Assembly (NCBI GenBank): GCA_965285935.1
Contig: OZ260666.1
Coordinates: 21,452,001-21,516,000, forward strand
From: Ophelia neglecta
Taxonomy: Eukaryota
Length of the DNA: 64,000 nt
Reading direction: 5' to 3'
Part shown: positions 1,660 to 55,810 of the stretch, piece by piece
Position numbering within the stretch: position 1 is the stretch's first letter
Layout: the number at the start of each line of letters is the position of its first letter
Notes under the pieces: generated by a model
The model's input: only the letters and a program-made list of their open reading frames with translations
The model's database searches: none
What the model was told of the DNA's origin: nothing
Made by a program: the position numbers and the translations under genes

Positions 1660-1692
1660 CAAATTAATATTTGCAGGGAAATCATAACAATG
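1660..1692 (+). promoter_or_regulatory. Putative 3' splice acceptor 13 nt upstream of the KLHL ATG (5'-UTR intron); equivalent site before every copy
   Basis: atatttgcag|ggaa-tcataac/aaATG is conserved in copies 1-4 and atatttccag|ggaaatcataacaATG in copy 5, whereas the upstream MNLL ATG is out of frame or absent in copies 2 and 3. Confidence 0.6.
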
Positions 1693-3775
1693 AAGGTAAC
1701 GACGACAGACTACCTGGGGTTCCATGAGAGAATGTCTAGTCTGAGGGAGATGGAGATTGGTCTGGACGGAGTTATCTGTGCCAAGGATGGAGAGGTCAGG
1801 GTCCATCTAACATACATGGCTGCCTGTAACCAGACTCTGTTCAACCGTATTGCTGGTCTCTTGAAACAGAGCAAGAAAGAATTGGCCGTCAAAACCATGT
1901 CGGGGAAAGGTTTACAGCTCATTGTAGATTATTGTTACTCTGGAGAGATCACAGTCTGTGAAGATAACTTTGAACATGTCATCGACGCTGCTCTGGGTCT
2001 GGAATTCCTGGACATAGTGGAGGAGTGTTTAAACTTTGCCTTGAATACAAATGCCAATGCAAATATTTGGTGTCACTTCCTGCGAGCCGCTTTTAAACAT
2101 CCTCGGTCAGTCCAACCAAAGGAATTTGTCCCTAATCTGATTTTGGATAATATTACTAAAGTTCCCAAGGAAGCAGTCATCAAAGGATTGGACGCTGCCT
2201 TCATCGGGGAGATTCTAGAACATGGGACGTTGTCTGAAAATAACAGGTGTTACGCAATGAATGTCTTTCTTGAGGTAATATTAGCAGAAGCAGGAGAAAT
2301 TACTAATTGCAAAAATACTTTCGTTGCAATGCGAGATATGGCGCAACCAGGAGATAAACTCATCATACCAAAAGAAGCCTCTGGTACATCCTTCATAGCA
2401 TTGACAGAGTTGTCACTGGGAATAAATTTTGTTGCCCTTATTAAAGCTTGTGTAGAAGGTTTGGTGAAAACGTCCCCTACAGCTCAAGGTACTTCACTCG
2501 CCTTGAAGTGGACCAAGCAGTATGCTGGGTCTGAGTCTGTGAGCTATCTCAACCAGTTATGTCTACATGCCTTCAAGGATCTGTCTGGACATTTCTGAGG
2601 ATGAACTCTGCCTGATGCTGGACAGTGACTACTTAGGACCAATGTTAGAATTCGATATTTTCAAAAATGTGGTGAAATGGATCAAGCACAATAATACAAG
2701 TGCTAAAACAAACTGTAGAGTAGTCGGTCTGATAAGATTTGGTCTGATGACAAAAGAAGAGATGGACGAAATAATTGTCGAGTATGATTTACCAGGTTGT
2801 GAGGCTATCTATGTATCTGCCATGAGGTGCCATTTAAGGCCTATTGACCAAAGAATAGCTATGGGAAACATAAACAAACTACGACGGAAGCATTCAACCA
2901 TTTACATCATGGGGGGACAGGGTTCAGGAAATAATTATAACAAGAATGTTATCACATCACAGGTTACCCATTTACAACACAACTCGTCCCTGTCTCCTTT
3001 TACCTCGTTGTGTGAAACCCCGTTTGCCCTTAGTAACAGTGCCTGTGCTGAGATGAATGGATTTATTTTTATTTCTGGTGGTGCAAACGAATCAGGTTGT
3101 GTTGCAACGATGTTCCGGCTGGACCCTCGTTCCTACTCATGGCTGGAACTAGAAAAGATGCAACAGAAACGACGCTCCCACACTTTGACATCAATAAACA
3201 CTTCGCTTGTCGCTGTTGGAGGAAAGGACAGAGAAATTAATACTGTGTGTGTAGAGATGTATGATATGACTACAATGAAATGGACATTAGGGGCTCCACT
3301 GCCCGGAGCACGTTGTCGGCATGCTGCGTCTTATGAAGACGGAGTTCTGTACATCAGTGGAGGTAGTCTGTCTAAGACACTGTATAGCTACCATGACAAC
3401 GTTTGGGTTGAAAAGTCTCCAATGTTGCAAGTACGTCAGAGCCATGCCATGACTAGTGTGGTTGGTATGCTGATAGTTGCTGGTGGAGCTGGGTTCGTGG
3501 ATGGTCAATGGAATGATGTGATGTCAACAGAGTGCTATGATATAATACAAGATCAGTGGACGGAACTCTCGTCTCCTAAGTTTGCTTGCGGTGTGGGTTG
3601 CTCAGTCAGGATTAATAACTGGTTTTATTTCCTCGGTGGATGCAGTTATAACGACAAAGTCTGGCTGGACTGTATACAAAGATATAATATTGAGGCCAAT
3701 GAATGGGAAATGTGTGAGAACAGGCTACCACACAGAATGTGTTGTATGGTCGCAGCAAGTATTAATAATAGTTGA
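1690..3775 (+). pseudogene. BTB-BACK-Kelch (KLHL-like) gene copy 1, frameshifted near 2581-2588
   Basis: ORFs 1639-2598 and 2567-3775 together are colinear with the intact paralogues. This copy reads gatctgtctggacatt where copies 2, 4 and 5 read atctgtctctggacatt, i.e. a 2-nt (ct) loss. Could be a real lesion or an assembly error. Confidence 0.85.
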
Positions 3776-4065
3776 CGTATTATAGAAATATCCTAATCAC
3801 TATGTGCAAGAATGCAACTATTAGTTCAAATCCAGTTTATTTACTCTGAAATGCGATTATGTCCGCTCGATGTACATAAGATAAGGTTGAATTATTTATT
3901 CAGGTGAAAAATTATTTCCAGGTATTTTTTTAAATAAACCCATGTTGTTAATAACACAGACGGCATTGTGGTCTGTCCTGGAGAGCCGGGATGGTGATTC
4001 GATTTAAATACTTGTTTTGCATTTCATCAGTCAATAACATAGGTTTTTGTTTAAGATTTAAGTTT

Positions 4066-4075
4066 AATAAATAAA
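4066..4075 (+). terminator. Candidate polyadenylation signal of KLHL copy 1; equivalent aataaacgtg after copies 2-4
   Basis: AATAAA about 290 nt after the stop, conserved in units 1-4 and followed by T/GT-rich sequence. Confidence 0.45.
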
Positions 4076-8109: not shown

Positions 8110-9310
8110 CCTCAGTCCTGGGGCCTCTCAGCCCAGGGGTCTCTCAGTCCTGGGGTCTCTCAGCCCTGGGGACTCTCCGCCCTGGGGGCTCTCAGCCCTG
8201 TGGTCTCTCGGCCCTGGGGACTCTCAGCCCTGGGGTCTCTTAGCCCTGGGATCTCTCAGCCCTGGGGTCTCTCAGTCCTGGGGTCCCTCAGTCCTGGGAT
8301 CTCTCAGCCTTGGGGTCTCTCAGTCCTGGGGTCTCTCAGTCCTGGGGGCTCTCAGCCCTGGGGTCTCTCAGCCCTGGGGTCTCTTAGCCCTGGGATCTCT
8401 CAGCCCTGGGGTCTCTCAGTCCTGGGGGCTCTCAGCCCTGGGGACTCTCAGCCCTGGGGTCTCTTAGCCCTGGGATCTCTCAGCCCTGGGATCTCTCAGC
8501 CCTGGGGCCTCTCAGCCCTGGAATCTCTCAGCCCTGGGGTCTCTCAGCCCTGGGGTCTCTCAGCCCTGGGGACTCTCCGCCCTGGGGGCTCTCAGCCCTG
8601 GGGACTCTCCGCCCTGGGGGCTCTCAGCCCTGTGGTCTCTCGGCCCTGGGGTCTCTCAGCCCTGGGGTCTCTCAGCCCTGGGGTCTCTCAGCCCTGGGAT
8701 CTCTTAGCACTGGGGTCTCTCAGCCCTGGGGTCTCTCAGCCCTGGGGTCTCTCAGCCCTGGGGTCTCTCAGCCCTGGGATCTGTTAGCACTGGGGTCTCT
8801 CAGGCCTGTGGTCTCTTAGCCCTGGGGGCTCTCAGCCCTGTGGTGTCTCGGCCCTGTGGTCTCTCGGCCCTGGGGTCCTTCAGCCCTGGGGTCTCTTAGT
8901 CCTGGGGTCTGTCAGCCCTGGGGTCTCTTAGCCCTGGGGTCTCTTACCCCTGGGGTCTCTCAGCCCTGGGGTCCCTCAGCCCTGGGGTCTCTCAGTCCTG
9001 GGGTCTCTCAGCCCTGGGGTCTCTCAGCCCTGTTGTCCTTCAGTCCTAAAATCTCTCAGTCCCGGGGGCTCTCAATCCCGGGGGCTCTCAGGCCTGTGGG
9101 TGCTGATCCCGGGGCTATCAATCCTGGGGGTCTGTCATTCCGTGGAGGACTTAGTCTGGTGGCCCTTCTGCCCAAATGTACTTGGTCTTGGGGTCTCTTA
9201 GTCCTGGGGAATTCCTAGTCCGCAGCGGGGGGGGGGGGGGGGGGAGACTCTTAGGTCGTGGACTATCCTCGGTGTCTCCTAGTCCGGGAGCATCTCAGTC
9301 AGGGGAGCTT
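8110..9310 (+). repeat. 16-bp minisatellite (ctctcagccctggggt); homologous arrays 23885-24810 and 35752-36890
   Basis: Directly visible tandem units. Confidence 0.95.
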
Positions 9311-10053: not shown

Positions 10054-11548
10054 GGTACATTATATGTGAAATTGGAGCGGGGGGGGGGGGGGGGGCGGCA
10101 AATTAGGGGAGGTGGGTGGTGGACGGAGTGGAGAGGGGGGACGGCAAATCAGGACGGGGGTCAATTTTTAAGGCTGTCCAAAATCACCAGGAATCGTCAG
10201 TCACACAAAATCAGGGCTCAATCATCTAACGCTTACTAAGATTATACTTGGAAATACGACCTTATAACGTATAGGCCATGATTTGACTTCAAGTGGCAGT
10301 CAACCACGTTCACATTTCATTCGGGGGCGTTCCGAGTCCACGGGAGGCAGGGGGGGGGGGGGGTATATCAGGCAGGGAAGAGAGGAAGAGGCGATGGAGC
10401 TAGGGCTTCCGGTATTAGGTCCTTCCACATAGACTTGTATGTTAACGTTTTGACTACATGATGTTATTCCAGTAGATGCACAGAAAACACAGGCCTCAAA
10501 TCACCTGCCATGTTAATACGACCCCCACCCATCCGCTGTCGCTCACCCAATACCGGGTCATGCTGTGATAATCTGGGCAACTGGTTATCAAGTATTTTAT
10601 TTACCTGTTGTATTATTTTCGTTTTAAATGTACCCGTAATATTAGGTTATTTTTGCTGAACTGTTCTTATCAGTTATCGGTGGCTATCGATCACTTAATA
10701 GTCGAACGTAAAGTACAACGTACATCACGTAACCGACGGCTATATTACAGCCCCTTTTGGCATGTTTACACGCTTAAGCGTTTAACTTGTTGTACACTTC
10801 TAGCCTAGCGAGTTTATGAGTAATGGAAATTCCCTATTTCTCGTTTTTCTGAAGTGTGTCCCATGTTGCTGCCTAGCAACGATAGACATACAGTTATAAG
10901 TACATCGTATGTAACAACTATCTGATTATACATCACGACATACCACGGATAACACATCAAACCCATTTGGCAGGATAGTTTCTTTCTCTGATATAATTTC
11001 GCCATTCTTTACCTCGTTTAAGGGAATTGTCAATTAATCTGGTAAGTGCCATTTTACTAGCTTTATTACCACACTGAGTGTTAAATCTACCATTATACAC
11101 TGTAGATCTATATTATATGTCTCAATGTAGATCTATTTTATATGTCTCAATGTTATAGCGGGACACCGCATCAACCCAGGTGATATTCACCTGTTGTAAG
11201 TCTAGCTGACATATTAACTTTTCAGGAAGCTATACACATTGATATGAATTGACAATAATGAATAAGTTACCGTTAAATGACGACTTTCAAACCTATAAAT
11301 CACCGATCAAATGGACTAATATGCTCAAGGCACTATGTTATTTAGGTGGATGGTTACGTTGGTAGACGCTGGGTCAGCGAATGATCAGTTCTTAAGTTTT
11401 CAGTTAGTATTACAGATTTTCATATAGTCGGTCTTTGCAATTCATTTTCTTTATACCTAGCAAATAAGTCGACATTTTCAAATGGCAACGGCAAGTATAT
11501 ATATTGTATGCGTCAACAGGTCCAAGATAAATACATGAAGCTGTCACT

Positions 11549-12460
11549 ACCGGGGTCTCTCAGTCCCCGGGGGTCTCTCTCGGGGGTTCTGAGTCCCCGG
11601 GGGTCTCTCAGTCCCCGGGGGTCTCTCAATCCGGGGGTCTCTCAGTCCCCGGGGTCTCTCAGTCCCCGGGGGTCTCTCAGTCCCGGGGGTCTCTCACTCC
11701 GGGGGTCTCTTAGTCCCCGGGGGTCTCTCAATCCGGGGGTCTCTCAGTCCCCGGCGTCTCTCAGTCCCCGGGGGTCTCTCAGTCCCCGGGGGTCTCTCAC
11801 TCCGGGGCCTCTCAGTCCCCGGGGTCTCTCAGTCCCCGAGGGTCTCTCAGTCCCCGGGCGTCTCTTAGTCCCCGGGGGTCTCTCAGTCCCCGGGGGTCTC
11901 TCACTCCGGGGGTCTCTCAGTCCCCGGGGGTCTCTCACTCCGGGGGTCTCTCAGTCCCCGGGGGTCTCTCAGTCCCCGGGGGTTCTGAGTCCCCGGGGGT
12001 CTCTCAGTCCCCGTGGGTCTCTAACTCCGGGGGTCTCTCAGTCCCCGGGGTCTCTAACTCCGGGGGTCTCTCAGTCCCCGGGGGTCTCTCAGTCCCCGGG
12101 GGTCTCTCAGTCCCCGGGGTCTCTCAGTCCCCGGGGGTCTCTCAGTCCCAGGGGGTCTCTTAGTCCCCGGGGTGTCTCAGTCCCCGGGGGTCTCTCAGTC
12201 CCCGGGGGTCTCTCAGTCCCCGGGGTCTCTCAGTCCCCGGGGGTCTCTCAGTCCCCGGGGGTCTCTCAGTCCCCGGGGGTGTCTCAGTCCCCGGGGGTCT
12301 CTCAGTCCCCTGGGGTCTCTCAGTCCCCGGGGGTCCCTCAGTCCCCGGGGTCTCTCAGTCTCCGCTGGTTCTGAGTCCGGGGGTCAATCAGTCTTGGGTT
12401 TTCAGTTCGGGGGCCCTCAGTCCGGGTGTCTCTCAGTCCATGGGTCCTTAGTCCGGGGGA
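11549..12460 (+). repeat. 17-18-bp minisatellite (ctctcagtccccgggggt), expanded only in unit 1
   Basis: Directly visible tandem units; no equivalent array at the matching position in units 2 and 3. Confidence 0.95.
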
Positions 12461-14762
12461 AGGGGAGGGGGAGGGGGAGGGTTGGATGGCTGACGCTTTT
12501 CAGCTTCTGAATCCGGAGCTCTTAGTACAGGAAGTGAGGGGGGAGGGGCATGACTCTCGATGCATGGAAGATCCTTGAAATCCAACCCACTTCCCCAATA
12601 AGTATTTACAATTAAGGTTTAAACTACAAAGTATGTGAGCGCGGGATTCCTTTTTAAAAAGTAATTTCTCCAGCGTCTTGTGCTCACCATTCACCGGAAG
12701 GGGGGTCTATATTCCAATGATTGTTTATCAAGGTCACAATGAGGGATATATGGAACAAGATATAGAACAAGACATATTACCTGAAAGGTAGGTAGGGCGG
12801 AGGTAGGGAAGGGGGGGGGGTAGGGGTTGCCGTGCATTAATATACACCATCTGCCATTGACCTGGTTGTATGAGCTTGCATGGTAGCATCATCACTAGAT
12901 TTTAGGATCATCTTAATATAATAAAAATTCAATACCACGTGACTGACCCCCATGCGTTCATATATATACCTCTTTTTCTTCTGAATACATTGGCCATACA
13001 CAGAGAAAACGATATGTAGACTTTAGTTGCTAGCCTATTTAAATCAGAGGAATCAATGGCTTTTATACTAATTCTTTTCTAAGACTCAAGTCTAAGACAA
13101 GAGCTTCCCATACTTCCTCATCTCTATGTTTTTCTACTTAACATTGCAATAAACGCAGCAGTTATAATCCTTGGTTGAAAGGACGATATAATAATATAAA
13201 TTCTCCTATAAGGATGGCGTACGTGCATGCTATCAGCTTAATGTTACCGCTAAAGGTCGGATTCCGAGCAGGACCTCGGCTTTTCCACGAGTCTAGGTTT
13301 TCACTGTCTCGAGATTGGGGAAAACGAAAGCACATGCATTCAAACAAGAGGCGGAAACAGGGAGGGAAGATGTTAGATGGGGTGATGAGGGTCCGGCGGG
13401 ATCGGTCGGGTTGTTATGTGGAGTAAACTATTTTCCCTATCAGGCCTCATAAGGAGGTAAACTTCTGGGCCATTCTGTCTCCATTTGCCCCCCCCCCCCC
13501 CCCGCAACAAATGCCTATATGCTTACAATGACTTTTGCGAGGAAATTGATACAACCACGTCGGGAAATTTTTATCGCTCATTGTTTGCTCCTCCCCCCTC
13601 CCAGCCCCCACCACCTTCCTGGCGTTAAATAATAAAAGTTCCCGAGAACCTCAGTCCGGGGTCCCTCAGTCCGGCCTCAGTCCGGGGTCCCTCAGTCCGG
13701 GAGTCTCTCAGTCCGGTGCTCTCTGAGTCCGGAGGTCTCAGTTCGGGGGTCCCTCAGTCCGGAGGTCTCTCAGTCCAAGAGGTCCCTCAGTCCGGGCTCC
13801 TTCATTCCGGTGGTCCCTCAGTCCGGGGGTCCCTCAGTCCGGGGGTCCCTCAATCCGGGGGTCTCTCAGTCCGGGCGCCTTCAGTCCGGTGGTTCCTCAG
13901 TTCAGCAGGGGTCTCTCAGTCCGGGCGCCTTCATTTCGGTGGTCCCTTAGTTCAGGAGTCTCTCAGTCCGGGTGTCCATCAGTCCGGGGAAAACTCATTT
14001 GGGGCTTTCTCATTCCAAGGAATTGAATAACGGGGGTTTTAAGTCCGGCGTCCCTCAGTCCGAGGGTTCTAATTCACAGTATTTTTAGTCCTTGGGTTTT
14101 CAGTCCGAGGCTCCCTCAGTCAGAGGGTTCTCAGTCCAGGAACTTCTAGTCTGGAGGTTTTCAGAACAGGGGCTCTCAGTCCGAGGGTTCTCAGTCAGGG
14201 GACTCTCAGCCCGGAGGTGTTTGTCCCGGGGGTCCCTCAGTCCGGGCTTCACTCAATTTGGGTTCTCAGTCCGGGGATTCTCAGCCTGGTAATTTTCAGT
14301 CTGCGCGTCCGTAAGTTCGGGTTTCTCCAATCGGGGGGTTCCACATCCTGGGGGTCCCTCAGTCACCAGGGTTCAGTCTTTACGTACCATATGGACTAAA
14401 ATAATCGGCAGGCGTTTATCAATTAAGGGGAGCTAAAAGCGTCTATTTTAGACCAGATTTCATTTTGGACACAGCGTTTATTATAGACCGATTTTGATAA
14501 TCTCACAATCCAGTCAACTATTATTGATCCGGCGCGTGTTATAGTTCGGCTTTTACTAAAGGCCATATTTGTCTCCATTTCACAATATGTAGATCTCGTG
14601 GCCTATAGGTGGGGAGTTGACTCCAAACAGTAATTTTTCATATGATAAAAGTACACCCGGTGATAGAATCAGGGTTTTGGTTCCTATTGGCGGCAAAGCA
14701 AAGTGATGTGAAATTATGAACTTATTATAGATCAAATTAATATTTGCAGGGAATTCATAACA

Positions 14763-16850
14763 ATGAAGGTTACGACGACAGACTACCTGGGGTTCCACGA
14801 GAGAATGTCTCGTCTGAGGGAGATGGAGATCGGTCTGGACGGAGTTATCTGTGCCAAGGATGGAGAAGTCAGGGTCCATCTACCATACATGGCCGCCTGT
14901 AACCAGACTCTGTTCAACCGTATTACTGGTCTCTTGAAACAGGACAAGAAAGAATTGGCTGTCAAAACCATGTCGGGTAAAGGTTTACAGCTCATTGTAG
15001 ATTATTGTTACTCTGGTGAGATTACGATCTCGGAAGATAACTTTGAGCACATCATTGACGCTGCTCTGGGTCTGGAATTCCTGGACATAGTGGAGGAGTG
15101 TTTAAACTTTGCCTTGAATACAGATGCTAATGCAAATATTTGGTGTCACTTCCTGCGAGCTGCTTTTAAACATCCTCGGTTAGTCCAACCAAAGGAATTT
15201 GTTCCTAATCTGATTTTGGATAATATTACTAAAGTTCCCAAGGAAGCAATCATTAAAGGATTGGACGCTGCCTTCATCGGGGAGATTCTAGAACATGGGA
15301 CATTGTCCGACAATAACAGGTGTTACGCAATGAATGTCTTTCTTGAGGTTATATTAGCAGAGACAGGTGAAATTACAAATTACAAAAATACTTTCGTTGC
15401 AATGCGAGATATTGCGCAACCAGGAGATGAACTGATCGTACCAAAAGAAGCCACTGGGACATCCATCATAGCATTGACAGAGTTGTCACTGGGAATAAAT
15501 TTTGTTGGCCTTATTAAAGCTTGTGTAGAAGGTTTGGTGAAAACATCCCCTACAGCTCAAGGTACTTCACTCGCCTTGAAGTGGGCCAAGCAGTATGCTG
15601 CGTCTGAGTCTGTGACGTATCTCAACCAGTTATGTCTACATGCCTTCAATAATCTGTCTCTGGACATTTCTGAGGATGAACTCTGCCTGATGCTGGACAG
15701 TGACTATTTAGGAACAATATCAGAAATGGATATTTTCAAAACTGTGGTGAAATGGATCAAACAAAACAACACAAGTGCTGAAACAAACCGTAGAATAGTC
15801 GGTCTGATCAGATTTGGGCTGATGACGAAAGAAGAAATGGAAGAAGTAATATTAGAGCACACTTTACAAGGTTGTGGGGATATATATGTATCTGCCATGA
15901 AGTACCATTTAAGGCCAAATGACCCACGACTAGCTGAGGGAAACATTAACAAACTACGACTGAAGAATTCAACCATTTACATCATGGGGGGGAAAGATTC
16001 ATTTAATAATTATATAAACAAAGTTGTGGCGTCAGAGGTTACACATTTAAAAGGCAACGTATCCCTGTCACATTTTACTGACGTCTGTGAAACCCCGTTT
16101 GCCATTTACAAAAGTGCTTGTGCTACTATGGATGGACTTATATTTGTTTCTGGTGGTGAAAACGAATCTGGCTGTGTTGCAACGATGTTCCGGCTTGACT
16201 CGCGTTCAAACGCATGGTTGGAACTACAAGACATGCGACAGATACGACATTCCCACACTTTGACAACTGTTGATGATTCCCTTTTCGCTGTTGGTGGATC
16301 GGTCGACAAAACCCATTTAGTCTGTGTGGAGAAATATGACGTGCGAAAAAACAAATGGTCACCTATGGCGCCACTGCCACGAGCACGAAGTCAGCATGCT
16401 GCGTCTTATGAAGACGGAGTTCTGTACATCAGTGGAGGTAGTCATTCTAAGACACTGTATAGCTACCATGACAGCGTTTGGATTGAAAAGTCTCCAATGT
16501 TACAAGTACGTCAGACACATGCCATGACTAGTGTGGTGGGTATGCTGATAGTTTCTAGTGGAGCTGTGTTCGTGGATGGTCAATGGAATGATGTGATGTC
16601 AACAGAGTGCTATGATATAATACAAGATCAATGGACGGAACTCTCGCCTCCTAAGTTTGCTTGCGGTTTGGGTTGCTCAGTCAGGATTAATAACTGGTTT
16701 TATATCATCGGGGGTTTTAGTCAAAATGACAAAGTCAGGCTGGATTGTATACAAAGATATAACATCGAGGCCAATGAATGGGAAATGTGTGAGAACAGGC
16801 TACCACACAAAATGTGTTTTATGGTCGCAGCATGTATTAATAATAGTTGA
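14763..16850 (+). CDS. BTB-BACK-Kelch (KLHL-like) protein copy 2, 695 aa, intronless CDS
   Basis: BTB motifs (VHLPYMAAC..LF; LQLIVDYCYSGEI; IDAALGLEF..VEEC), BACK motifs (LCLMLDSDYL..E.DIFK.VVKWI; IRFGLM) and six Kelch repeats (GG..Y/F..W). Confidence 0.95.
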   Translation: MKVTTTDYLGFHERMSRLREMEIGLDGVICAKDGEVRVHLPYMAACNQTLFNRITGLLKQDKKELAVKTMSGKGLQLIVDYCYSGEITISEDNFEHIIDAALGLEFLDIVEECLNFALNTDANANIWCHFLRAAFKHPRLVQPKEFVPNLILDNITKVPKEAIIKGLDAAFIGEILEHGTLSDNNRCYAMNVFLEVILAETGEITNYKNTFVAMRDIAQPGDELIVPKEATGTSIIALTELSLGINFVGLIKACVEGLVKTSPTAQGTSLALKWAKQYAASESVTYLNQLCLHAFNNLSLDISEDELCLMLDSDYLGTISEMDIFKTVVKWIKQNNTSAETNRRIVGLIRFGLMTKEEMEEVILEHTLQGCGDIYVSAMKYHLRPNDPRLAEGNINKLRLKNSTIYIMGGKDSFNNYINKVVASEVTHLKGNVSLSHFTDVCETPFAIYKSACATMDGLIFVSGGENESGCVATMFRLDSRSNAWLELQDMRQIRHSHTLTTVDDSLFAVGGSVDKTHLVCVEKYDVRKNKWSPMAPLPRARSQHAASYEDGVLYISGGSHSKTLYSYHDSVWIEKSPMLQVRQTHAMTSVVGMLIVSSGAVFVDGQWNDVMSTECYDIIQDQWTELSPPKFACGLGCSVRINNWFYIIGGFSQNDKVRLDCIQRYNIEANEWEMCENRLPHKMCFMVAACINNS

Positions 16851-26197: not shown

Positions 26198-28056
26198 CTG
26201 TAGGGCGGTGGTAGGGAAGGGAAGGGGAGGGCAGTCGATAGGATTTGCCGTACATTATCTGCCATTGACCTGGTTGTATGAGCTAGCATGGTAGCATCAT
26301 TACTAGATTTTAGGATCATCTTAATATAATAAAATTCAATACCACGTGAGTGACTCCCATTCGTCCGTATATATACCTCTTTTTCTTCTGAATACATTGG
26401 ACATAGACAGAGAACACGATATGTAGACTTTAGTTTCTGACCTATTTAAATCAGAGAAATCAATGGCTTTTATACTATTTCTTTTCTAAGACTCAAGTCT
26501 ATGAAAAGAGCTTCCCAAACTTCCTCATCTCTATGAAGGTTCTTTACTACTTAACATTGCAATAAACGCAGCAGTTATATTCCTTGGTTGAAAGGACGAT
26601 ATAATAATATAAATTATCCTATAAGGCTGGCGTACATGCATGCTATCAGCTTAATGACACGACTAAAGGTCGGATTCCGAGCAGAACCTCGGCTAACGTG
26701 TTATCGCTTCCTAGAGTCTAGGTTTTCACTGTCTCGGGATTTGGGAAAATAAAAGCACATGCATTCAAACAAGAGGCGGAAACAGGGAGGGAAGATATTA
26801 GATGGGGTGATGAGGGTCCGGCGGGGTCGGCCGGGTTGCTATGTGGAGTTAACTATTTTCCCTATAAGGAGGTAAACTTATGGGCCATTCTATCTGTATT
26901 TGCAACCCCTCCCCCCCGCCACCAATGCCTATATGTTAATAATGACCACCCCTTATTGCTACTCGAAACAGCAGTTTCTAATTACACAGTTGACTCCCGC
27001 TCTCTGGCAGCCTCTGTTGAAAGTTGCATGGCGGTACGTGATAACTCCACGTTTCGTCTCATGCGCGAACATTGATACAACCACGTCGGGAAAATTTTAA
27101 TGCTCACCGTTTGCTCCCCCCCTCCCCCGTCCGGGCGAAAAGTATTAAAAGTTCCCGAGGGTCCCTCAGTCCAGTGGTCTCTCACTGCGGTGGTTCTCAG
27201 TCCGGTGGTCCCTCAGTCCGGTGGTCTCTCAGTCCGGGGGTCTCTCAGTCCGGGGGTCTCTCAGTCCGGTGGTTTTCAGTTCAGGGGTCTATCAGTCCGG
27301 TGTTTCTCAGTCCGGGGGTCTACCAGTCCGGGGGTATCTCAGTCCCGGGGTCTATCAATGCGAGGGTTCTCAGTCCAAGGACGTGAATTCCGGGGTTTTA
27401 AGTCCGGCGTCCTTCAGTCCGAGGGTTCTAATTCACAGTACTTTTAGTCCTGGGGTTTTCAGTCTGGGGCTCCCTCAGTCCGAGGATTCTCAGTCTGGGG
27501 ACTCACAGCCCGGAGGTGTTTGTCCCGAAGGTCCCTCAGTCCGTGGTACACTCAATCTGGGTTCTCAGTCCGGGGATTCTCAGCCTGGTAATTTTCAGTC
27601 TGCGGATCCGTCAGTTCGGGTTTCTCCAATCGGGGGGTTCGTCATCCTGGGGATCCCTCAGTCTTCAGGGTTCAGTCTTTACGTACCATATGGACTAAAA
27701 TAATTAAGGGGAGCTAAAAGAGCTTATTTTAGACCAGATTTCATTATAGACACGGTGTTTATTATAGACAGATTTGGTAAATCTCACAATCCAGTCAATT
27801 ATTATTGACCCGGCGCGTATTATAGCTCGGCTTTTACTAAAGGCCGTATTTGTCTCCAATTTAGCTCTACAATATGTAGCTCTCGTGACCTATAGGTGGT
27901 GAGTTGACTTCGAACTGTAATTATTCACATGGTAAAAGTACACCCGATAATAGAAACACATATTGGTCCCTATTGGCGGCAAATCATAGTAATGTGAAAA
28001 TATAAGCTTATTTACCTACTAAAGATCAAATTACTATTTGCAGGGAATTCATAAAA

Positions 28057-36100: not shown

Positions 36101-39100
36101 GGGCTCTCAGTCCTGGGGCCTCTCAGCCCTGGAATCTCTCAGCCCTGGGGGCTCTCAGTCCTGGGGCCTCTCAGCCCTGGGGTCCCTCAGTCCCGGGGTC
36201 TCTCAGTCCTGGGGCCTCTCAGCCCTGGAATCTCTCAGCCCTTGGGGCTCTCAGTCCTGGGGCCTCTCAGCCCTGGGGTCCCTCAGTCCCGGGGTCTCTC
36301 AGCCCTGTGGTCTCTCAACCCTGGGGTCTCTCAGTCCTGGGGTCCCTCAGTCCAGGGGTCTGTCAGTCCTGGGGTCTCTCAGCCCTGTGGTCTCTCGGCC
36401 CTGGGGTCTCCCAGCCCTGGGGTCTCTCAGCCCTGGGGTCTCTCAGCCCTGGGATCTCTCAGCCCTGGGGTCTCTCAGTCCTGGGGCCTCTCAGCCCTGG
36501 AATCTTGTAGCCCTGGGGCTCTCAGCCCTGTGGTCTCTCGGCCCTGGGGTCTCTCTCAGCCCTGGGGTCTCTCAGCCCTGGGGTCTCTTAGCCCTGGGGT
36601 CTCTCAGCCCTGTTGTCCTTCAGTCCTAAAGGCTCTCAGTCCCGGTGGCTCTTAATCCCGGGGCTCTCAGGCCTGTGGGTGCTGATCCCGGGGCTATCAA
36701 TCCTGGGGGTCTGTCATTCCGTGGAGGACTTAGTCTGGTGGCCCTTCTGCCCAAGAGTACTTAGTCTGGGGGTCTCTTAGTCCTGGGGAATTCCTAGTCC
36801 GCAGCGGGGGGGGGGGGGGGGGGGGACTCTTAGGTCATGGACTGTCCTCGGTATCTCCTCGTCCAGGAGCATCTCAGTCAGGGGAGCTTTAAGCCTTGGA
36901 ACGTTCATATGTATGCCAGGGGTGGGGTTCGCGGAGTAATGTGAGGTGGGGGCATCTACTTTGTACCCGTATCAGGAGCGGGCCGTCTATTGTTCCACCA
37001 TCTACTGCCGAAAACTTGAGTTTGTTTCGGAAATCGGATGAAAATGGTACATTTATATCTGAAATTAGAGCGGGGGGGGGGGGGGGGGGGACGGCAAATT
37101 AGGAGATGTGGGTGGTGGACGGAGTGGAGAGGGGAGGGTGCACTCAATCCGTATCTGAACTTATGTTTTTGGATAAATCGTCCAAATATACATTATAAAA
37201 AAATAAATAACGGGGATCAATTTTTAAGTCTGTCCAAAATCACCAGGAATGATCAGTTTAGGCCCACAAAATCAGGGCTCAATCATATAACGCTAACTAA
37301 GATTGTACTTGTCTATTGGAAATACGAAATTATAACGTATAGGCCACGATTTGACTTCGAGAGGCGGTCAACCACGTTCACATTTCATTCGGGGGCGTTC
37401 TGAGTCCGCGGTATGCAGGGGGGAGGGTATCTCAGGCAGTGGAAAAGAGCAAGGGGCGATGGGACCTGGGGCTTCCGGTATTTGGTTCTTTCACATAGAC
37501 TTGGATGTTAACGTTTTGACTGTATGATATTATTCCAGTAGATGCATAGAAAACACAGGGCTCGAATCACCTGCCATGTTAATACGACCCCCACCCATCC
37601 GCTGTCGCTCACCCAATACCGGGTCATGCAGTGATAATCTGGGCTACTGGTTATCAAGTATTTTATTTACCTGTTGTATTATTTCCGCTTTAAATGTACC
37701 CGTAATATTACGTTATTTTTGCAGACCTGTTCTTATCAGTAATCGGTGGTTATCGATCGCTTAATAGCTAACGTAAAGTACAACGTACATGTACATTAAA
37801 ATTCCTGAGTTAATACTGTTTAGCAGGTAAGAGACGGCTTTAGCACAGCACCATTTGCCATGTTTACATGCTTAAACGTTTAACTAGTTCTACACTTCTA
37901 GCCTAGCGAGTTTATGAGTAATGGAAATTCCCTATTTCTCGTTTCTCAGAAGTGTGTCACCTGTTACCGCCCAGCAAAGATAGACACACAGGTATAAAGT
38001 ACATCGTATCTAACAACTATCTGATTATACATCACGACATACCAAGGATAACACATCAAATCCATTTGGTAGGATAGTTTGTTTCTCCGATATAATTTCG
38101 CCATTCCTTACCTTGTTGAAGGGAATTGTCAATTAATCTGGTAAGTGCCATTTTACTAGCTGTATTACCACACTGAGTGTTAAATCTACCATTACACATT
38201 GTAGCCAGAAGATCTATATTATATGTCTCAACGTTATAGCGGGACACGTCATCAGCCCAGGTGAAAGTCACCTGTTTTAGGTCTAGCTGACATATTAACT
38301 TTAGGATGTCTGACCCTTTTAGTCTCGGGAGTTCAGATCCGGGAGGTTTTAGTAGAGGACGTTGGAAGGGGGAGGGGGGCATAACTCACGGTGCATGGAA
38401 GATCCAACATCCAGCCCACACCACCAATATCCACCAAAATAACAAATTATATACAATCTACGGTTTAGATTACAAAGTATGTGAGCGCGCAATTCATATT
38501 TACAAAATAATTTCTCCAGCGTCCTGGGCTTAGCATTCAACCGGAAGGGGGGTCTATATTCCAATGATTGTTTATCAAGGTCACAACGAGGGAGATATAG
38601 AACAAGATATGGAACGAGACATATTACCTGTAAGGTGGGTAGGGCGGTGGTAGGGAAGGGAAGGGGAGGGCAGTCGATAGGAGTTGCCGTGCATAAATAT
38701 ACATCATCTGCCATTGACCTGGTTGGATGAGCTTGCATGGTAGCATCCTTACTAGATTTTAGGACCATCTTAATATAATTAAGTTTCAATACCACGTGAC
38801 TGGCTTCGATGGGTCCGTATATATACCTCTTTTTCTTCTGAATACATTGAAGACAGAGAAAACGATATGTAGACTTTAGTTTCTGACCTATTTAAATCAG
38901 AAAAATGGATGGCTTTTATACTATTTCTTTTCTAAGACTCAAGTCTAGGAAAAGAGCTTCCCAAACTTCCTCATCTCTATGAAGGTTCTTTACTACTAAA
39001 CATTGCAATAAACGCAGCAGTGATATTCCTTGGTTGAAAGGACGATATAATAATATAAATTCTCCTATAAGGCTGGCGTACGTGCATGCTATTAGCTTAA

Positions 39101-40737
39101 TGTTACGACTTAAGGTCGGATTCCGGGCAGGACCTCAGCTTACGTGTTATCACTTGCAAGAGTCTAGGTTTTCACTGTCTCGGGATTCGGGAAAACGAAA
39201 GCACAAGCATTCAAGCAAGAGGCGAAAAGGGGGAGAGAAGATATTAGTTGAGGGGGTCAGGTTCCGGCCGGGTCGGCCGGGTTGCTATGTGGAGTAAACT
39301 ATTTTCCCTATTAGGCCTCATATGGCGGTAAACTTCTGGGCCATTCTGTCTCCGTTTGCCCCCGCCCGTACCCCCTCCCCCCGCCACACATGCCTATATG
39401 TTAATCATGATCATGACCACCCCCTTAGGGGCCGACCATTTGATAATGTAGGGGGGGGGGGGGGAGAAAAATTTAGAAAAAAAAAGTTTGTTGGCCAGCT
39501 CTGGCCACAAAAATGGCTGTCACAGTACTTGAGAAAAAAAAATGTTTGTCTTGCACATTGTGAACAAATCATAAATGATCTTCCAGAAGAAAAAATGTTT
39601 GCAGGCGAATTATGAGGGGAAAAAAAGATTGTTTTGAAGGAGGCAAAAAAAAAAGTTAGGAAAAAAAAAATTTCTCACCCCCCCCCCCCGGTGGTCCCAC
39701 AGTCCGGGGGTCTCTCAGTCCGAAGGTCTATCAGTCCGGGGGTATCTCATTTCGGGTTTTCTCAGCCCCGGGATCGCTCAGACAAAAAAAGCCAGTATTA
39801 TCATATACGAATATTTCAATATAAATTAATTTGACAATAATTCTGTATCTCGAAGACTATTGTCAATAGGTCCCCCATTGTAGCGATTTGTAGCAAGGGT
39901 CCTCAATCTGGGGGTCGCTCCTTCAGAGAATACCGAGACCGAAGGTCCCTCAGACTGAGGTCTCTCAGTCCGGAGCTTGGAATCATCGGATTGCTTAGTC
40001 AGGCTGTTCCTAGTATGGGGACTCTCGGTCCAGAGGTCTAGGGGTCCCTCAGTCAAGGGTTTATCAGTCTGGGGGTTCTCAGGTCAAGGGACCCATCCAA
40101 GGGCTTTCTGTCCGGGATCGGTCCGAACTGTGAGTCGAAGTGCACTTTGAGTCGGGGCGTGTGAGGGGGGGGGGGGCTTTGTGTCCATGTGGACTTTGAG
40201 TCCAGGGCGCGGGGGGAGGGGGTTATTTTCCGTCAGGGAGAAAGAGAGGAGCTGCAGCCTCAGAGTCTCTAAATCTGAGGGTTTTAAATGCCCAGGATTC
40301 TCGGGTCATGGTGGTCTCGTTGGAGGCTCTCAGTTGGAGGGAGGGGGGGGGGGGGTCGGTGTCTTTTGGCCTAAGGGTTTATCAGTAACGTGTGGGTTCG
40401 TCTGTCTCTTGAGGACGGGGAGCTTTGAGTCCAGGGGACAAGGAGACCGGTGGTGGTGGTGGTGATGGTGGTTGGTGGGATGGGGGATGGGGGTGGGGGG
40501 GGGGGGATGGTGGCTGGGGTGGGGGTTTCTCCAATTTAGCTCCACAATATGTAGATATCGTGACCGATTTCGTTCCAATAGGTGGCGAGTTGACTGCGAA
40601 CTGTAATTTTTCACATGGTAAAGTACACCCGATGAGATAATCACATATTGGTTCCTATTGGGAGAGGATCATAGTAATGGGAAGAAATGAACTTACTAAC
40701 AACAGATCAAATTAATATTTGCAGGGAAATCATAACA

Positions 40738-46669: not shown

Positions 46670-49600
46670 TCAAATGGGTTGTATTTTCAGTACCATGTGT
46701 TTAAAGGTGTACCAATGATTAAAAGTGGTGTGCCAAACAATTCCGTTACCAGCACGCCAGCCCATACTTGGGTAATGTCTGCCGTTTGGATTTGCAAAGA
46801 GACAAGCATTAAACCACCATCCGCCTGCAGTATTTACAGCACAAGAACCAGTAGGACCGAGATCGTTGTCACTGTCGTAGGTCGAAAACTTCATGTTATT
46901 ACTAAGTCCCTGCCAGCCCAGCTCCGTTGTTAGACTGTCTCCGGCTGTCGAGTAGTTTTGGTAGCCGGACACGCTCAGGGTGTATTTGGAAGACTCCGGT
47001 CCCACGGAAAAGGAGGAGTATTCGGAGAAATACTGTGTAGCATTCCAAGCTGTCATCTCAACACGGAGCTTGTACGGCCGGCTTGAGGTCAGTGTGTGAA
47101 GAGCTTCTAGTCCCAGCCAGAACTCCCCACACGGATCCCCAAATCCAGCGCGGTAGTCCGCCCATGATCGGTTGAAGTTCACCGATCCGTCCAGGCGGCG
47201 AACGACAATTTGCCACCCACCATCAAATAGGCTAGTCCATGTCTGAAACGGAATTCTTCTAAGTCGATATACAATGTTTGAATAACATAGAGTCAGTAGC
47301 GAGCCTAGATTCGGCAATGGAGCTCCAATAGGCAAAACACAGGAGCCTGAAGTACACGTTCATAGAATAACGTCGAATGAAAAAAGATGCAAAATTTACA
47401 GATGGTCTGAATTATTACAGTGGAACTTGTCTAATCAGGTTAGTCATGGGGCTGGAAAAAACTGACCACATTATGTAGGTGACCTTAATAGGCAGGTCAG
47501 TTAATACAGGGATTCATAGGTTATAAAATCAGCCTATTGTTGTTATTGTTGTATTATCTACCTTGCTGTTTGATGAGCATCTTTCCTTTGAGAAAACCGA
47601 CGAAGTGTTCCCAGGAATGCCAGTTTGTTTTCCGTCCGAAAACAAAAAACAGGTTTCGTCCTCTCGGTCGTAATGGTAATGTACACAATCCGCCAAGGTA
47701 CACTGTGTGACACAGTCGACTCGAGAACTACTCTTCCTCTTTGACACGAGGGATTTGGACCATATATTCACTTCCCAATTTGACTGGTACACGACTTGCT
47801 TCTCGGGTACCGCATCTGCAGCTGAAAACAATGGTGTAACTTCTTATAGCTAATGTTTGAATGAAACCTTCGGTTGAAATGAATATTTGCTTCAGCGACA
47901 TGTTCATCAAATTAAAATTTTAAGACCAACGATGCGATTTGTTTAACTGCAGGTTTATTGTTCTTGCCTTCAGTCTGATCGTCTTGTAACAGCACATGAA
48001 ACGGAAGCAACGCCCAAAATATTGGGGTCGAATTAAATTCTTGGCAGTCAGTCCCAAAACCTCATTTTTTAAATGTGGCCCAATTTCTATATACAGTGGT
48101 CCCTGCGATGTAGGGACACCTCTACATCCATGCAAATGTGTCCTTACAAGACAGGTGTCCCTTCATCAGAGGAACATTAACATAGGAAAGATAGGACAAG
48201 GGCATTGAAAATCGTCCTATGGTCGGAGGGTGTCCCTTCATTACCAGAACCACATTGTAATTTCTAGTCCGGCATTTTTTCCATATTAGGCTATAAATGT
48301 AACCAAATGGATATGTGTCACTCGTTGCTATTATTTAGTGGTGCTATGTATTGTCATCCACTCTCTAGTCAAGGGCCATAATGGAAATAAGTCCTCATCT
48401 GCAGAACTTTTTATGCTTCCTTTTCAGGAAATTGGGAAATGTGATGGTGCCATATATTTATTGTCTTCTGTGATATACATTGTATTTTGTACACCGTCTA
48501 TTTACTTTTTCTGAATCAAATCAAATCAATCAATCAACCACTGTGATCCCAGTGTCATGTCTGCATTGTTGATTTATTCCAATACAATCGCCACTGGCAA
48601 TGTGGAACTGTATCAAAACTTGTTTAATCTATAAAACCATCATTGTTCAAACCAGCACAATATCAATTAGTTGTCAAATAATTTTAAACAAATTATATCA
48701 ATAGGTAACAAAGGGATATTTTTTCATTTTATCCATTTTCGCTGAATGCAATGCAAATCCTTTAAAACAAAGAATACCAAACCGGGATGAAAGGGTTAGT
48801 GTTCGATTAAAAAATAACTGATGTCGTCCATTGTCCTCACGATATCAAAAATGTTAGAATTTCTAGACACTGTGAAATTGTACACCGGCAGATTTTATTA
48901 CAAGTAATGATGTTGTCCTGGATTTGATACAAACGTCTACACAGGACACACTCGGTGCCGCAATTAAAGCACCTGAGTACGTAGAGCACGGGGCTGGATG
49001 TCTTATCAGATAGTTACTTAGTTCATCCACCTTTCTAGCAACTTTAAATAAAGAAGTGAAGGGACTTCAACGACAAAAAAAGAAGAAGATGCAATTAGCA
49101 GGAAAGAAACCTTACTACGAAGCAATGTTTCAAATTGATTAAGAAAAAATAGAAAAAAAATTGTAATTGGAAAGAGAATAGATGTTCATACCGTGGACTA
49201 CATTTTCATTTATCAATAGTTATAGAGAAACCAATACTCCAAAATGCAAGTTAAACCGGCCGTTCATTTATTATAAAAACCGTTTTGATCAAATCAATTG
49301 AAGTAACTTATATAACATTTTTTGCACAAACTACTTTATTAAGTCTCATACATGACGTTGCCTTACAACGTTCTGAAAGTCTGTCATCATAGAAATCTGG
49401 CATACAGGCTTACAATAAAATAGCAAATATATGACACAAATATCATATATTTGGGTGTGATTTGATTTCCAGGAGGAGATATGTGTTTTAGGAAAACAAT
49501 ATATAACTGAGAAATTTGCATAAATAAACACTAAGAAGGCGATCAGGAAAACAAACTTAAAACCGAAATGCTAGCGGAAACCACACCGACTTCCCTCCAG

Positions 49601-49730: not shown

Positions 49731-49865
49731 TTCTTACGGTTCTAGAATCACTTGGTGCGCTTCCCTGAGTAACTCGACGACACCACTGAGCGGAGTATTA
49801 TACAACCAGCATTAACAACGTCTCTGGTAAATACGCATGAGCAATCATTCAGGCCAATGTTCAAT

Positions 49866-53000: not shown

Positions 53001-53728
53001 TTGAACGAAAAATTCTAGTTGGTTGGTCGCCTGTTCTGTCGGACTACTATAGACAAAGCCTCAGGAGTCTGTCCGATGTGTTTTCAGTCCGAGGACTCAC
53101 AGTGCAACAGCCTCTGAATCTATGCCCAGGGTTTCTCGGGTCATGGTACTCTCTGTTTGGAGACGCTCAGTCAGGGGGGGGGGGGTGCTCAAAATCCGGG
53201 TGTCTTTTTTTGTCTTGGGGTTCATCAGTAATGCGTGGGTTCGTCAGTCTGGAGGGCTCTTGAACAATGGAGCTTAGACAAGGGCGCAGGGGGGAGGGGG
53301 AGGAGGAGGTGGAGGGGGGGGGGGCTTCAGCGTTCAGTTCTTACATACCGTATGCACTAAAATAATCGGCGAGCGTTTAGAAATAACGGGGAGCTAATAG
53401 AACCGGCGCTTATTTTAGGCCGGATTTCATTATAGACAAGGTGTTTATTATAGACAGATTTTGTTAAGCTCACAATCCAGTCAATTATTATTGATCCGGC
53501 GCGTATTATAGCTCGGCTTTTATTAAAGCCCGTATTTATCTCCAATTTAGCTCTACAATATGTAGCTCTCGTGGCCTATAGGTGGGGAGTTGACTTCGAA
53601 CTGTAATTTTTACATGGTAAAAGTACACCCGGTGATAGAATCAAATATTGGTTCCTATTGGCGGCAAAACAATTGTGATGAACTTACTCAATGTAGATCA
53701 AATTAATATTTCCAGGGAAATCATAACA

Positions 53729-55810
53729 ATGAAGGTTACAACAACAGACTACCTGGGGTTCCACGAGAGAATGTCTCGTCTGAGGGAGATGGAGATCGGT
53801 CTGGACGGAGTTATCTGTGCCAAGGATGGAGAGGTCAGGGTCCATCTACCATACATGGCTGCCTGTAACCAGACTCTGTTTAACCGTATTACTGGTCTCT
53901 TGAAACAGAACAAGAAAGACCTGGCCGTCAAAACCATGTCGGGTAAAGGTTTACAGCTCATTGTAGATTATTGTTACTCTGGAGAGATCACAGTCTGTGA
54001 AGATAACTTTGAACACGTCATCGACGCTGCTCTGGGTCTGGAGTTCCTGGACATAGTGCAAGAGTGTTTAAACTTTGCCTTGAATACAGATGCTAATGGA
54101 AATATTTGGTGTCACTTCCTGCGAGCTGCTTTTAAACATGCTCGGTTAGTTCAACCGAAGGAATTTGTCCCTAATCTGATTTTGGATAATATTACTAAAG
54201 TTCCCAAGGAAGCAATCATCAAAGGATTGGACGCCGCCTTCATCGGGGAGATTCTAGAACATGGGACATTGTCTGAAAATAACAGGTGTTGCGCAATGAA
54301 TGTCTTTCTTGAGGTAATATTAGCAGAGACACGGGAAATTACAAATTACAAAAATACTTTCGTTGCAATGCGAGATATTGCGCAACCAGGAGATAAACTG
54401 ATCATACCAAAAGAAGCTACTGGAACATCCATCATAGCATTGACAGAGTTGTCACTGGAAATAAATTTTGTTGGCCTTATTAAAGCTTGTGTAGAAGGTT
54501 TGGTGAAAACATCCCCTACAGCTCAAGGTACTTCACTCGCCTTGAAGTGGGCCAAGCAGTATGCTGGGTCTCAGTCTATGAGCTATCTCAACCAGTTATG
54601 TCTACATGCCTTCAAGGATCTGTCTCTGGACATTTCTGAGGATGAACTCTGCCTGATGCTGGACAGTGACTACTTAGGACCAATGTCAGAATATGATATT
54701 TTCAAAAAAGTGATGAATTGGATAGAACACAACAATACAAGTGCTGACACAAACTGTAGAGTAGTCGGTCTTATACGATTTGGTCTGATGACGAAAGAAG
54801 AAATGGAAGAAGTTATTGGCGATTACGATTTTCCTGGTTGTGAGGCTATTTATTTTTCTGCCATGAGGTACCATGTAAGGGCTTATGAGCAGCCGTTAAC
54901 TAGGGGAAACATTAACAAACTACGGCTGAAGAATTCAAAGATTTACATCATGGGCGGAAAGGATTTAACAAATAACTATAACAAGAAAGTTATCACGTCC
55001 GAGGTTACCCAAGGCAACGCATCTTTGTCTCCTTTTACTGATGTGTGTGAATCCCCGTTCGTCGTTTACAAAACTGCTTGTGCTGAGATGAATGGATTTA
55101 TATTTGTTTCTGGTGGGCAAAACGAATCTGGCTGTGTTGCAGCGATGTTTCGGCTTGACTCTCGTTCAAACGCATGGCTGGAACTACAAGACATGCGACA
55201 GAAACGACGTTCCCACACTTTAACATCAATTGATGCCTCCCTTGTCGCTGTTGGAGGTTGGGACGCTGAATGTCAAATTGCCTGTGTGGAGACGTATGAT
55301 GTTAGAGAACAGAAATGGACACTAGTGGCGCCATTGCCAAGAGCACGATCTCAGCATGCTGCGTCTTATGAAGACGGAGTTCTGTACATCAGTGGAGGTA
55401 GTCAGTCCAAGACACTGTATAGCTTCTGTGACAATGTTTGGAATGAAAAGTCTCCAATGTTGCAAGTACGTCAGAGCCATGCCATGACTAGTGTGGTTGG
55501 TATGCTGATAGTGGTTGGTGGAATAGTGTCATTGGAGAGTAAATGGAAAGATGTCATGTCAGCAGAGTGTTATGATATAATACAAGATCAGTGGACGGAA
55601 CTATCGCCTCCTAAGTTTGCTTGCGATTTGGGTTGCTCTGTCAGGATTAATAACTGGTTTTATATCATCGGAGGTTATAGTCAAAACGACAAAACCTGGT
55701 TTGACTGTATACAAAGATATGACGTCGAGGCCGATGAGTGGGAAATGTGTAATTTGAAACTTCCGCATAAAATGAGTAGAATGGTCACAGCATATATTTA
55801 TAATGTTTGA
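53729..55810 (+). CDS. BTB-BACK-Kelch (KLHL-like) protein copy 5, 693 aa from MKVTT, most divergent 3' end
   Basis: ORF 53648-55810. C-terminus (CNLKLPHKMSRMVTAYIYNV) and 3' flank diverge from copies 1-4. Confidence 0.95.
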   Translation: MKVTTTDYLGFHERMSRLREMEIGLDGVICAKDGEVRVHLPYMAACNQTLFNRITGLLKQNKKDLAVKTMSGKGLQLIVDYCYSGEITVCEDNFEHVIDAALGLEFLDIVQECLNFALNTDANGNIWCHFLRAAFKHARLVQPKEFVPNLILDNITKVPKEAIIKGLDAAFIGEILEHGTLSENNRCCAMNVFLEVILAETREITNYKNTFVAMRDIAQPGDKLIIPKEATGTSIIALTELSLEINFVGLIKACVEGLVKTSPTAQGTSLALKWAKQYAGSQSMSYLNQLCLHAFKDLSLDISEDELCLMLDSDYLGPMSEYDIFKKVMNWIEHNNTSADTNCRVVGLIRFGLMTKEEMEEVIGDYDFPGCEAIYFSAMRYHVRAYEQPLTRGNINKLRLKNSKIYIMGGKDLTNNYNKKVITSEVTQGNASLSPFTDVCESPFVVYKTACAEMNGFIFVSGGQNESGCVAAMFRLDSRSNAWLELQDMRQKRRSHTLTSIDASLVAVGGWDAECQIACVETYDVREQKWTLVAPLPRARSQHAASYEDGVLYISGGSQSKTLYSFCDNVWNEKSPMLQVRQSHAMTSVVGMLIVVGGIVSLESKWKDVMSAECYDIIQDQWTELSPPKFACDLGCSVRINNWFYIIGGYSQNDKTWFDCIQRYDVEADEWEMCNLKLPHKMSRMVTAYIYNV

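Follow-up and report, generated by a model that had tools for sequence, protein, structure and literature searches.

A tandem array of single-exon BTB-BACK-Kelch genes in Ophelia neglecta with probable diversifying selection at the Kelch substrate pocket

Does a tandem array of KLHL-type genes in Ophelia neglecta encode a set of substrate receptors whose binding pockets have been diversified by selection on an otherwise constant scaffold? The question is raised by a 64,000-nt stretch of contig OZ260666.1 (assembly GCA_965285935.1, positions 21,452,001 to 21,516,000; here, the window), which carries five plus-strand units about 13 kb apart. Each unit has a single coding open reading frame (ORF), and in all five Pfam recognizes a BTB domain (PF00651), a BACK domain (PF07707), and six Kelch repeats. 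An initial annotation of the window had described a five-gene array with hypervariable substrate-binding loops on a constant cullin-3-binding scaffold and had proposed an arms-race repertoire that targets foreign or selfish-element proteins for degradation. We find that roughly 10 to 15 positions at the predicted pocket change faster than neutral, while the loop tips taken together are approximately neutral or somewhat above. We consider it highly probable that this reflects genuine diversifying selection at the pocket. The full mechanistic reading, in which the paralogues would act as cullin-linked substrate receptors and make up a repertoire of diversified pockets, is the one toward which we lean, with less assurance.

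The array proved larger than the annotation had supposed, and its first member is broken. A six-frame search of the genome from which the window comes (762 Mb) recovered no fewer than 30 full-length units, distributed over three clusters that fit within 1.8 Mb; the largest of them (C9:21.32-21.59 Mb, 22 units) includes the window. An uninterrupted reading frame of about 695 codons is present in 20 units, and these 20 paralogues were used for the comparisons below. Within the window, copy 1 (1690..3775, + strand) is a full-length unit with a 2-bp deletion near 2585, where "CT" is missing from a TCTC run relative to copy 2, leaving two ORFs (1639-2598 and 2567-3775) whose products match copy 2 at 92% and 76% identity. 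Copy 1 thus appears to be either a pseudogene or an assembly error. The other four, all on the + strand, are intact: copy 2 (14763..16850; 695 aa), which serves as the numbering reference, copy 3 (L012; 28057..30141; 694 aa), copy 4 (L013; 40738..42825; 695 aa from the conserved MKV start), and copy 5 (L017; 53729..55810; 693 aa).

The encoded proteins have a KLHL-like fold with one unusual insertion. In copy 2, a BTB domain (residues 17-118; 14811..15116, + strand; PF00651, 34.2 and 32.9 bits; cut-off, 20.5) is followed by a helical insert of about 150 aa (residues 119-269; 15117..15569, +; eight helices in the model), a BACK domain (approximately residues 270-365; 15570..15857, +; PF07707, 39.2 bits against a cut-off of 20.9 over residues 274-362), and a six-bladed Kelch propeller (residues 403-692; 15969..16838, +; Kelch_1, 111 bits, with DSSP and Foldseek in agreement), in which the C-terminal strand 688-692 closes blade 1. 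The AlphaFold2 model of copy 2, built from a 37-sequence alignment, has a mean predicted local distance difference test score (pLDDT) of 89.3 and consists of the BTB domain, an all-helical region, and a propeller with six four-stranded blades at pLDDT >90. Foldseek matched this propeller to those of KLHL2, KLHL3, KLHL12, KLHL17, and KEAP1 (target template modeling score, 0.87-0.92; root mean square deviation, 2.1-3.0 Å; E of ∼1e-23 to KLHL2, KLHL3, and KEAP1), and the full-length model aligned with KLHL22 of a CUL3 complex (8khp). Of the features that define KLHL/KBTBD proteins, BTB, BACK, and a C-terminal six-bladed Kelch propeller are all present; a BACK domain (3-box) straight after the BTB domain is absent, with ∼150 residues intervening. 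The insert (residues 119-269) has no significant Pfam match. It is shared with P0001 and P0007, two homologues from a metagenome described below, and canonical KLHL homologues are gapped there. An origin as a duplicated BACK domain was considered and is not established (internal BLASTP to BACK, E = 0.16; no Pfam match).

Identity falls steadily from the N terminus to the propeller. Among the four intact window copies, mean identity was 94.9% for BTB, 88.9% for residues 119-365, and 76.5% for the propeller; among all 20 intact copies the values were 94.7%, 87%, and 75%. The pairwise ratio of nonsynonymous to synonymous divergence (dN/dS, or omega) rose along the same axis, from 0.16 for BTB (dS, 0.17) through 0.41-0.43 for residues 119-365 (dS, 0.16-0.18) to 0.52 for the propeller (dS, 0.29), and the linker between BACK and Kelch (residues 366-402) was variable too. 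Model-based estimates gave omega of ∼0.22 for BTB, 0.44 for the propeller framework, and 0.9 for the top loops, and nowhere in the protein is purifying selection stronger than in BTB (omega, 0.16-0.22). Because dS is lower in the N-terminal part, its constancy may be due partly to gene conversion beside purifying selection. Overall omega was 0.44-0.5, well below 1; the ORFs are therefore maintained as coding sequence. The initial annotation had contrasted a constant N-terminal half with a variable propeller, as both identity and omega bear out; its description of the BTB and BACK regions as almost identical suits BTB but fits BACK less well. The residue strings that it had listed (those after the glycine doublet in blades 1, 2, 4, and 6, the blade 3 heptads, and five inter-blade strings) are all found in the translations.

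Probable site-level selection on the propeller

The paralogues do not share a single history along their length. Trees of the N-terminal and Kelch halves rejected each other (log-likelihood differences of 393 and 709; approximately unbiased test, P < 0.001), and in a GARD-like dynamic programme over 528 segments the corrected Akaike information criterion kept improving up to 8 segments, with the Bayesian information criterion favoring 4-5. Given these conflicting trees and the preference for segments, the paralogues are mosaics, and since mosaicism makes a single-tree site model unsafe, per-segment trees were used throughout. Models M1a, M2a, M7, M8, and M8a were fitted to the 20 intact paralogues as mixtures over a dense omega grid with our own implementation of the GY94/F3x4 pruning likelihood, each segment having its own maximum likelihood tree, kappa, and branch scale.

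Models with a positively selected class were preferred under every partition. With 6 segments, twice the log-likelihood difference (2dlnL) was 166 for M2a-M1a, 215 for M8-M7, and 180 for M8-M8a; with 8 segments, M2a-M1a gave 165 and M8-M8a gave 153. For M8-M8a, finer partitions gave 150 (14 blocks, 50 codons each) and 89 (28 blocks, 25 codons each). The selected class comprised 6-12% of codons at an omega of 2.4-3.2. When regions were analyzed separately under the 8-segment partition, the propeller alone had 12.5% of sites at omega 3.0 (2dlnL, 138), and the N-terminal 400 codons had 4.8% of sites in the class (2dlnL, 44).

We then placed these sites on the propeller by loop topology, not by coordinates, taking the blade topology from DSSP of the model. 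Thirteen propeller sites had an M8 posterior >0.95 under both partitions (residues 411, 449, 497, 518, 543, 561, 567, 585, 603, 635, 654, 659, and 686). In copy 2 these hypervariable codons lie within 15993..16820 (+ strand; codon starts at 15993, 16107, 16251, 16314, 16389, 16443, 16461, 16515, 16569, 16665, 16722, 16737, and 16818), and the corresponding columns hold 4-11 different amino acids among the 20 paralogues, charge reversals included. Sites were concentrated in the B-C and D-A loops relative to the rest of the propeller (11/131 versus 2/159; Fisher P = 0.004) and in Kelch relative to the N-terminal half (13/290 versus 3/402; P = 0.001). All six D-A loops yield a site, 1-3 residues before strand A, and five of the six B-C loops yield one no more than 6 residues from the GG doublet. 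The framework residues that flank the variable ones (GG, R, W, and Y) do not change, even among homologues that are 25% identical. The equivalent KEAP1 positions presumably include residues that contact Nrf2. Sites called in the N-terminal half (61, 66, 140, 183, and 322) are not claimed as selected; they show 2-4 states and fall within the false-positive rate of the null.

The excess is confined to the tips of the loops. Whole B-C and D-A loops (131 codons) had an omega of 0.90-0.94, compared with 0.40-0.44 for the propeller strands (129 codons) and 0.50-0.56 for the bottom A-B and C-D loops (30 codons); whole loops were therefore rejected as classes with omega >1, and only their tips exceed 1. 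A class of 36 codons, defined as the three residues after each GG and the three before each strand A, had an omega of 1.7 (1.5-1.9; 2dlnL of 41.6 against omega = 1), with the rest of the propeller at 0.54, and the estimate was still 1.5-1.7 with 14 or 28 blocks. Substrates of Kelch domains are bound on the upper face of the propeller, at a site whose shape is given by the D-A loops between blades together with the protruding B-C loops (Canning et al. 2013; PMC3597819), and these pocket-forming loops of KEAP1/KLHL adaptors are where the variable residues of the array sit. The initial annotation had placed the variability after the GG doublets and in the inter-blade loops, had assigned those loops to the substrate pocket, and had named recombination-aware site models of dN/dS as the check; on each count its expectation agrees with these results, and the signature of omega >1 at B-C and D-A positions survives.

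Neutral and cullin-independent alternatives

Several observations weigh against reading the array as a repertoire of positively selected receptors. Those that concern selection bear on an alternative in which the family undergoes neutral birth and death, the loop tips are simply unconstrained (omega of ∼1), and homoplasy from short-tract gene conversion is misread as omega >1. In our codon models, branch lengths were fixed and site posteriors were of the naive empirical Bayes type. In addition, under-modeled recombination inflates both the tests and the site calls, as seen in null simulations. These applied the M8a parameters to tree mosaics estimated from the real data, with omega fixed at 1 in each of the 36 loop-tip codons and 32% of sites evolving neutrally. 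When 14 simulated blocks were analyzed as 6 segments (26 replicates), M8-M8a rose as high as 42 and the class omega as high as 1.3; when 28 blocks were analyzed as 6 segments (27 replicates), the maxima were 74 and 1.6. The null median in these two under-modeled sets was 8-14 sites with a posterior >0.95. A tree-free ratio from pairwise NG86 estimates, dN of the 36-codon class over dS of the propeller, was 1.11 (bootstrap, 0.74-1.63), not significantly above 1, with 1.43 for closer pairs, and mean amino acid diversity of the same class matched the neutral null (0.447 observed versus 0.429; P = 0.35). One third of the units are disrupted, 10 full-length units carrying stops or frameshifts. Because the tree-free class tests are weak, the case for positive selection rests on about 10 to 15 sites together with model inference.

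Nevertheless, neutral birth and death is unlikely to account for the data. The observed M8-M8a statistics (89-180) lie above all 66 null replicates. The signal also persists when every 25-50 codons are given their own tree, and the matched null is well calibrated (14 blocks analyzed as 14, 13 replicates; M8-M8a of −4 to 1.6; class omega of 0.86-1.2). Tree-free counts point to an excess of extreme sites relative to 214 null simulations with a neutral divergence slightly above the real one. Ten propeller sites had an amino acid diversity of at least 0.8 (null mean, 4.1; P = 0.019), eight had at least 7 residues (null mean, 3.6; P = 0.033), and the maximum at any one propeller site was 11 residues (null mean, 7.8; P = 0.005). 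These simulation-calibrated counts were used instead of a comparison of "minimum changes" with fourfold sites, which was not relied on, as fourfold sites saturate sooner. Finally, the pattern is regular, with one or two selected sites per loop at equivalent positions in six blades and an omega of ∼0.5 in the bottom loops.

The remaining points of this kind concern docking and expression. The phi-x-E motif of the BTB alpha3-beta4 loop reads L-K-Q in all 20 copies (L58-K59-Q60 in copy 2 by motif alignment; 14934-14942, + strand); the same position is L-Q-Q or L-D-Q in P0001 and P0007 and M-R/K-E in canonical homologues. The hydrophobic residue is thus retained and the glutamate is replaced by glutamine. 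Furthermore, 150 aa sit between BTB and BACK, where the 3-box normally abuts BTB. Both features would be expected if these proteins are not cullin-3 adaptors and the propeller instead serves cullin-independent binding, as in scaffolds, sequestering proteins, or decoys, and the change from E to Q is invariant in the family and in its relatives of 35-37% identity. We consider this alternative improbable. The hydrophobic phi residue is kept, and glutamine can still hydrogen-bond; BTB is the most strongly constrained part of the protein; the full-length model aligns with a KLHL protein taken from a CUL3 complex; and the first part of the insert shows a nonsignificant resemblance to the beginning of BACK. 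Near the L-K-Q motif, the site models also called residues 61 and 66, each with three states and in the false-positive range. The cullin genes of this genome are multi-exon. With respect to expression, no RNA run was among the sequencing runs found for the array, and the three runs that matched cover genes and spacers alike in short, collapsed contigs and so behave as DNA.

Family, repeat units, and neighboring genes

Besides the cluster that includes the window, four units lie on the opposite strand at C9 22.79-22.82 Mb, and four units plus fragments lie at C9 23.05-23.10 Mb. Members from the three clusters are interleaved in the tree. The expansion is lineage specific, tandem, and pseudogene bearing, as in the paradigm MATH-BTB and F-box families, and this is a family of single-coding-exon genes with rapid gain and loss of copies. 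Two loci 62 kb apart, L020 (C9:21525409) and L021 (C9:21587750), are near-identical, with branch lengths of ∼0.002; the highest pairwise identity within the family is 99.8% over the N-terminal 400 residues and 99.0% over Kelch. The L020/L021 pair may have arisen very recently by duplication of a block of several units, or it may be a duplication introduced in assembly.

Four single-ORF BTB-BACK-Kelch genes of similar length and 38-52% identity occur elsewhere in the genome (C2:95014417-95016510, C2:100179351-100181435, C2:100769063-100771150, and C9:66438986-66441064), and they are likely to represent the source lineage of the expansion. Outside the genome, a search of 1.84 billion representatives yielded just two close full-length relatives, P0001 and P0007 (35-37% identity), which are single intronless BTB-BACK-Kelch genes on low-coverage eukaryotic contigs (L031 and L032) of the ENA metagenome assembly ERZ25069296. 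Each stands alone on its own contig with no array visible, and one adjoins dynein heavy-chain exons. An Atlas search returned generic KLHL clusters only, some of them mainly molluscan.

The duplicated unit extends well beyond the gene. Homology covers the whole ∼13-kb unit, with 81-93% identity in the intergenic parts, and each unit includes a GC-rich 16-bp minisatellite upstream of the gene (16-18 bp, 50-60 copies each), as at 8111..9101 (no strand assigned). Further GC-rich minisatellites occupy 1-909, 11552-12393, 23888-24773, and 35754-36612, and such repeats yield spurious long ORFs, e.g., 11508-12374. An estimate of flank divergence over all 20 loci was discarded, as it was dominated by alignment noise from the minisatellites. 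An Rfam scan of the window returned no match.

Upstream of the coding region, the splice-acceptor-like motif TATTTGCAG lies 14 nt before the MKV ATG of copy 2 (14741..14749, + strand) and recurs in all five units (other starts at 1668, 28035, 40716, and 53707; 5 matches versus 0 expected), within polypyrimidine-CAG stretches at 1668-1687, 14741-14760, 28035-28054, 40716-40735, and 53707-53726. The 200 bp upstream of the MKV start are ∼82% conserved and contain CCAAT/ATTGG-like boxes, and an upstream in-frame ATG is not kept in copy 3. This arrangement suggests that the conserved MKV methionine is the start and that it is preceded by an intron in the 5′ untranslated region or by a nearby promoter.

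Between copies 4 and 5, the spacer is without most of the homology seen among the other units. A PAN-fibrinogen gene fragment (46670-47831, − strand) lies in it; the fibrinogen C-terminal domain spans 46673-47335 (Pfam E = 1.6e-54), and a PAN domain is encoded at 47532-47831. The best outside matches of this ORF, from bivalve, coral, and fish, do not exceed 52% identity, and the combination of PAN with a fibrinogen-related domain is common to oyster and coral proteins. The nested gene offers a weak contextual hint of an immune role.

Precedents, evolutionary driver, and significance

In the mechanism that we favor, the N-terminal half is held constant by purifying selection and possibly by gene conversion too, the residues that ring the upper propeller face (the first of each B-C loop after GG and the last of each D-A loop before strand A) outpace neutral change, and segment exchange between paralogues recombines the resulting pocket variants. 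Homology to KEAP1 and the other KLHL proteins predicts that each paralogue dimerizes through its BTB domain, associates with a cullin-3 ligase, and exposes a distinct pocket; the paralogues together would constitute an intracellular repertoire of substrate receptors for ubiquitination. Cullin binding, ubiquitination, and expression are steps that we infer, as is the nature of the targets, which may be pathogen, selfish-element, or germline-conflict proteins. A more specific version seems doubtful: some 20 KLHL-type propellers, with pockets diversified both by point substitution and by segment exchange between paralogues, would each deliver its own foreign target (a viral, microsporidian, transposon, or toxin protein) for cullin-dependent ubiquitination. 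Such an undescribed class of invertebrate receptors would then be the Kelch counterpart of TRIM5/finTRIM and of nematode MATH-BTB and F-box proteins.

An immune arms race may be what drives the diversification, and a role in germline or reproductive conflict is equally compatible with the data. Fast-evolving, pseudogene-rich tandem families are typical of testis-expressed genes. Moreover, the termite Zootermopsis nevadensis has 37 BTB-BACK-Kelch copies, an expansion that has been read through the spermatogenesis role of KLHL10 (PMC4348803). Under such a scenario the diversification would be real, with sperm competition, meiotic drive, or a toxin-antidote system in place of immunity as its cause. 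However, the array has no tie to KLHL10; its best named relative is KLHL9 (27% identity), and its best sequence matches among solved structures are KLHL20 and KLHL17. A reproductive driver is possible but rather unlikely.

How far does the array resemble systems already described? Like KEAP1, KLHL2, KLHL3, KLHL12, KLHL20, and KLHL22, its proteins combine BTB, BACK, and a six-bladed Kelch propeller. In contrast to these adaptors, with which they share 20-27% identity, they are 693-695 aa long, carry a 150-aa helical insert after BTB, and have phi-x-Q; moreover, the array consists of ∼30 tandem paralogues with a single coding exon, whereas KEAP1 and the KLHL adaptors are single conserved orthologues. 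The termite KLHL10-like expansion likewise involves tens of BTB-BACK-Kelch copies in one invertebrate genome. That account (PMC4348803) gives domain counts and a proposed role in spermatogenesis, and its text, in the portion considered here, contains no evidence on site-level selection, pocket mapping, or orthology.

The closest evolutionary precedent lies in other adaptor families. Expansions of MATH-BTB (BATH) and F-box genes in Caenorhabditis and plants combine a conserved docking module with a positively selected substrate module (Thomas 2006, as cited in PMC4091423). The likeness extends to lineage-specific tandem gain and loss and to a conserved cullin-docking module paired with a selected substrate surface. 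The array differs in that its variable module is the Kelch pocket and not MATH or FTH/FBA, in its occurrence in another invertebrate lineage, and in the documented exchange of segments between paralogues. Literature searches turned up no earlier description of a KLHL array under positive selection. The general principle is already established for the MATH-BTB and F-box families.

E3-linked intracellular receptors with a constant half, hypervariable selected binding loops, and tandem arrays are also known from TRIM5, TRIM22, and the B30.2 domains of teleost finTRIM proteins. These differ from the proteins of the array in having an unrelated fold (RING-B-box-coiled-coil-SPRY) and an intrinsic ligase that is not recruited through a cullin.

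The idea of a ubiquitin-based innate repertoire is a long-standing one for the MATH-BTB and F-box families of nematodes and plants and has been poorly tested. The same evolutionary signature is now found on a different and structurally well-understood module, the Kelch pocket, and the array adds a case in which a binding surface is shuffled by segment exchange between paralogues besides point mutation. If germline conflict proves to be the driver, the array would still be a clean example of pocket-focused diversifying selection in the KLHL family. With about a dozen specificity positions, twenty natural variants, and a conserved scaffold, it constitutes a tractable system in which swaps of paralogues or pockets and comparison of their substrates are feasible.

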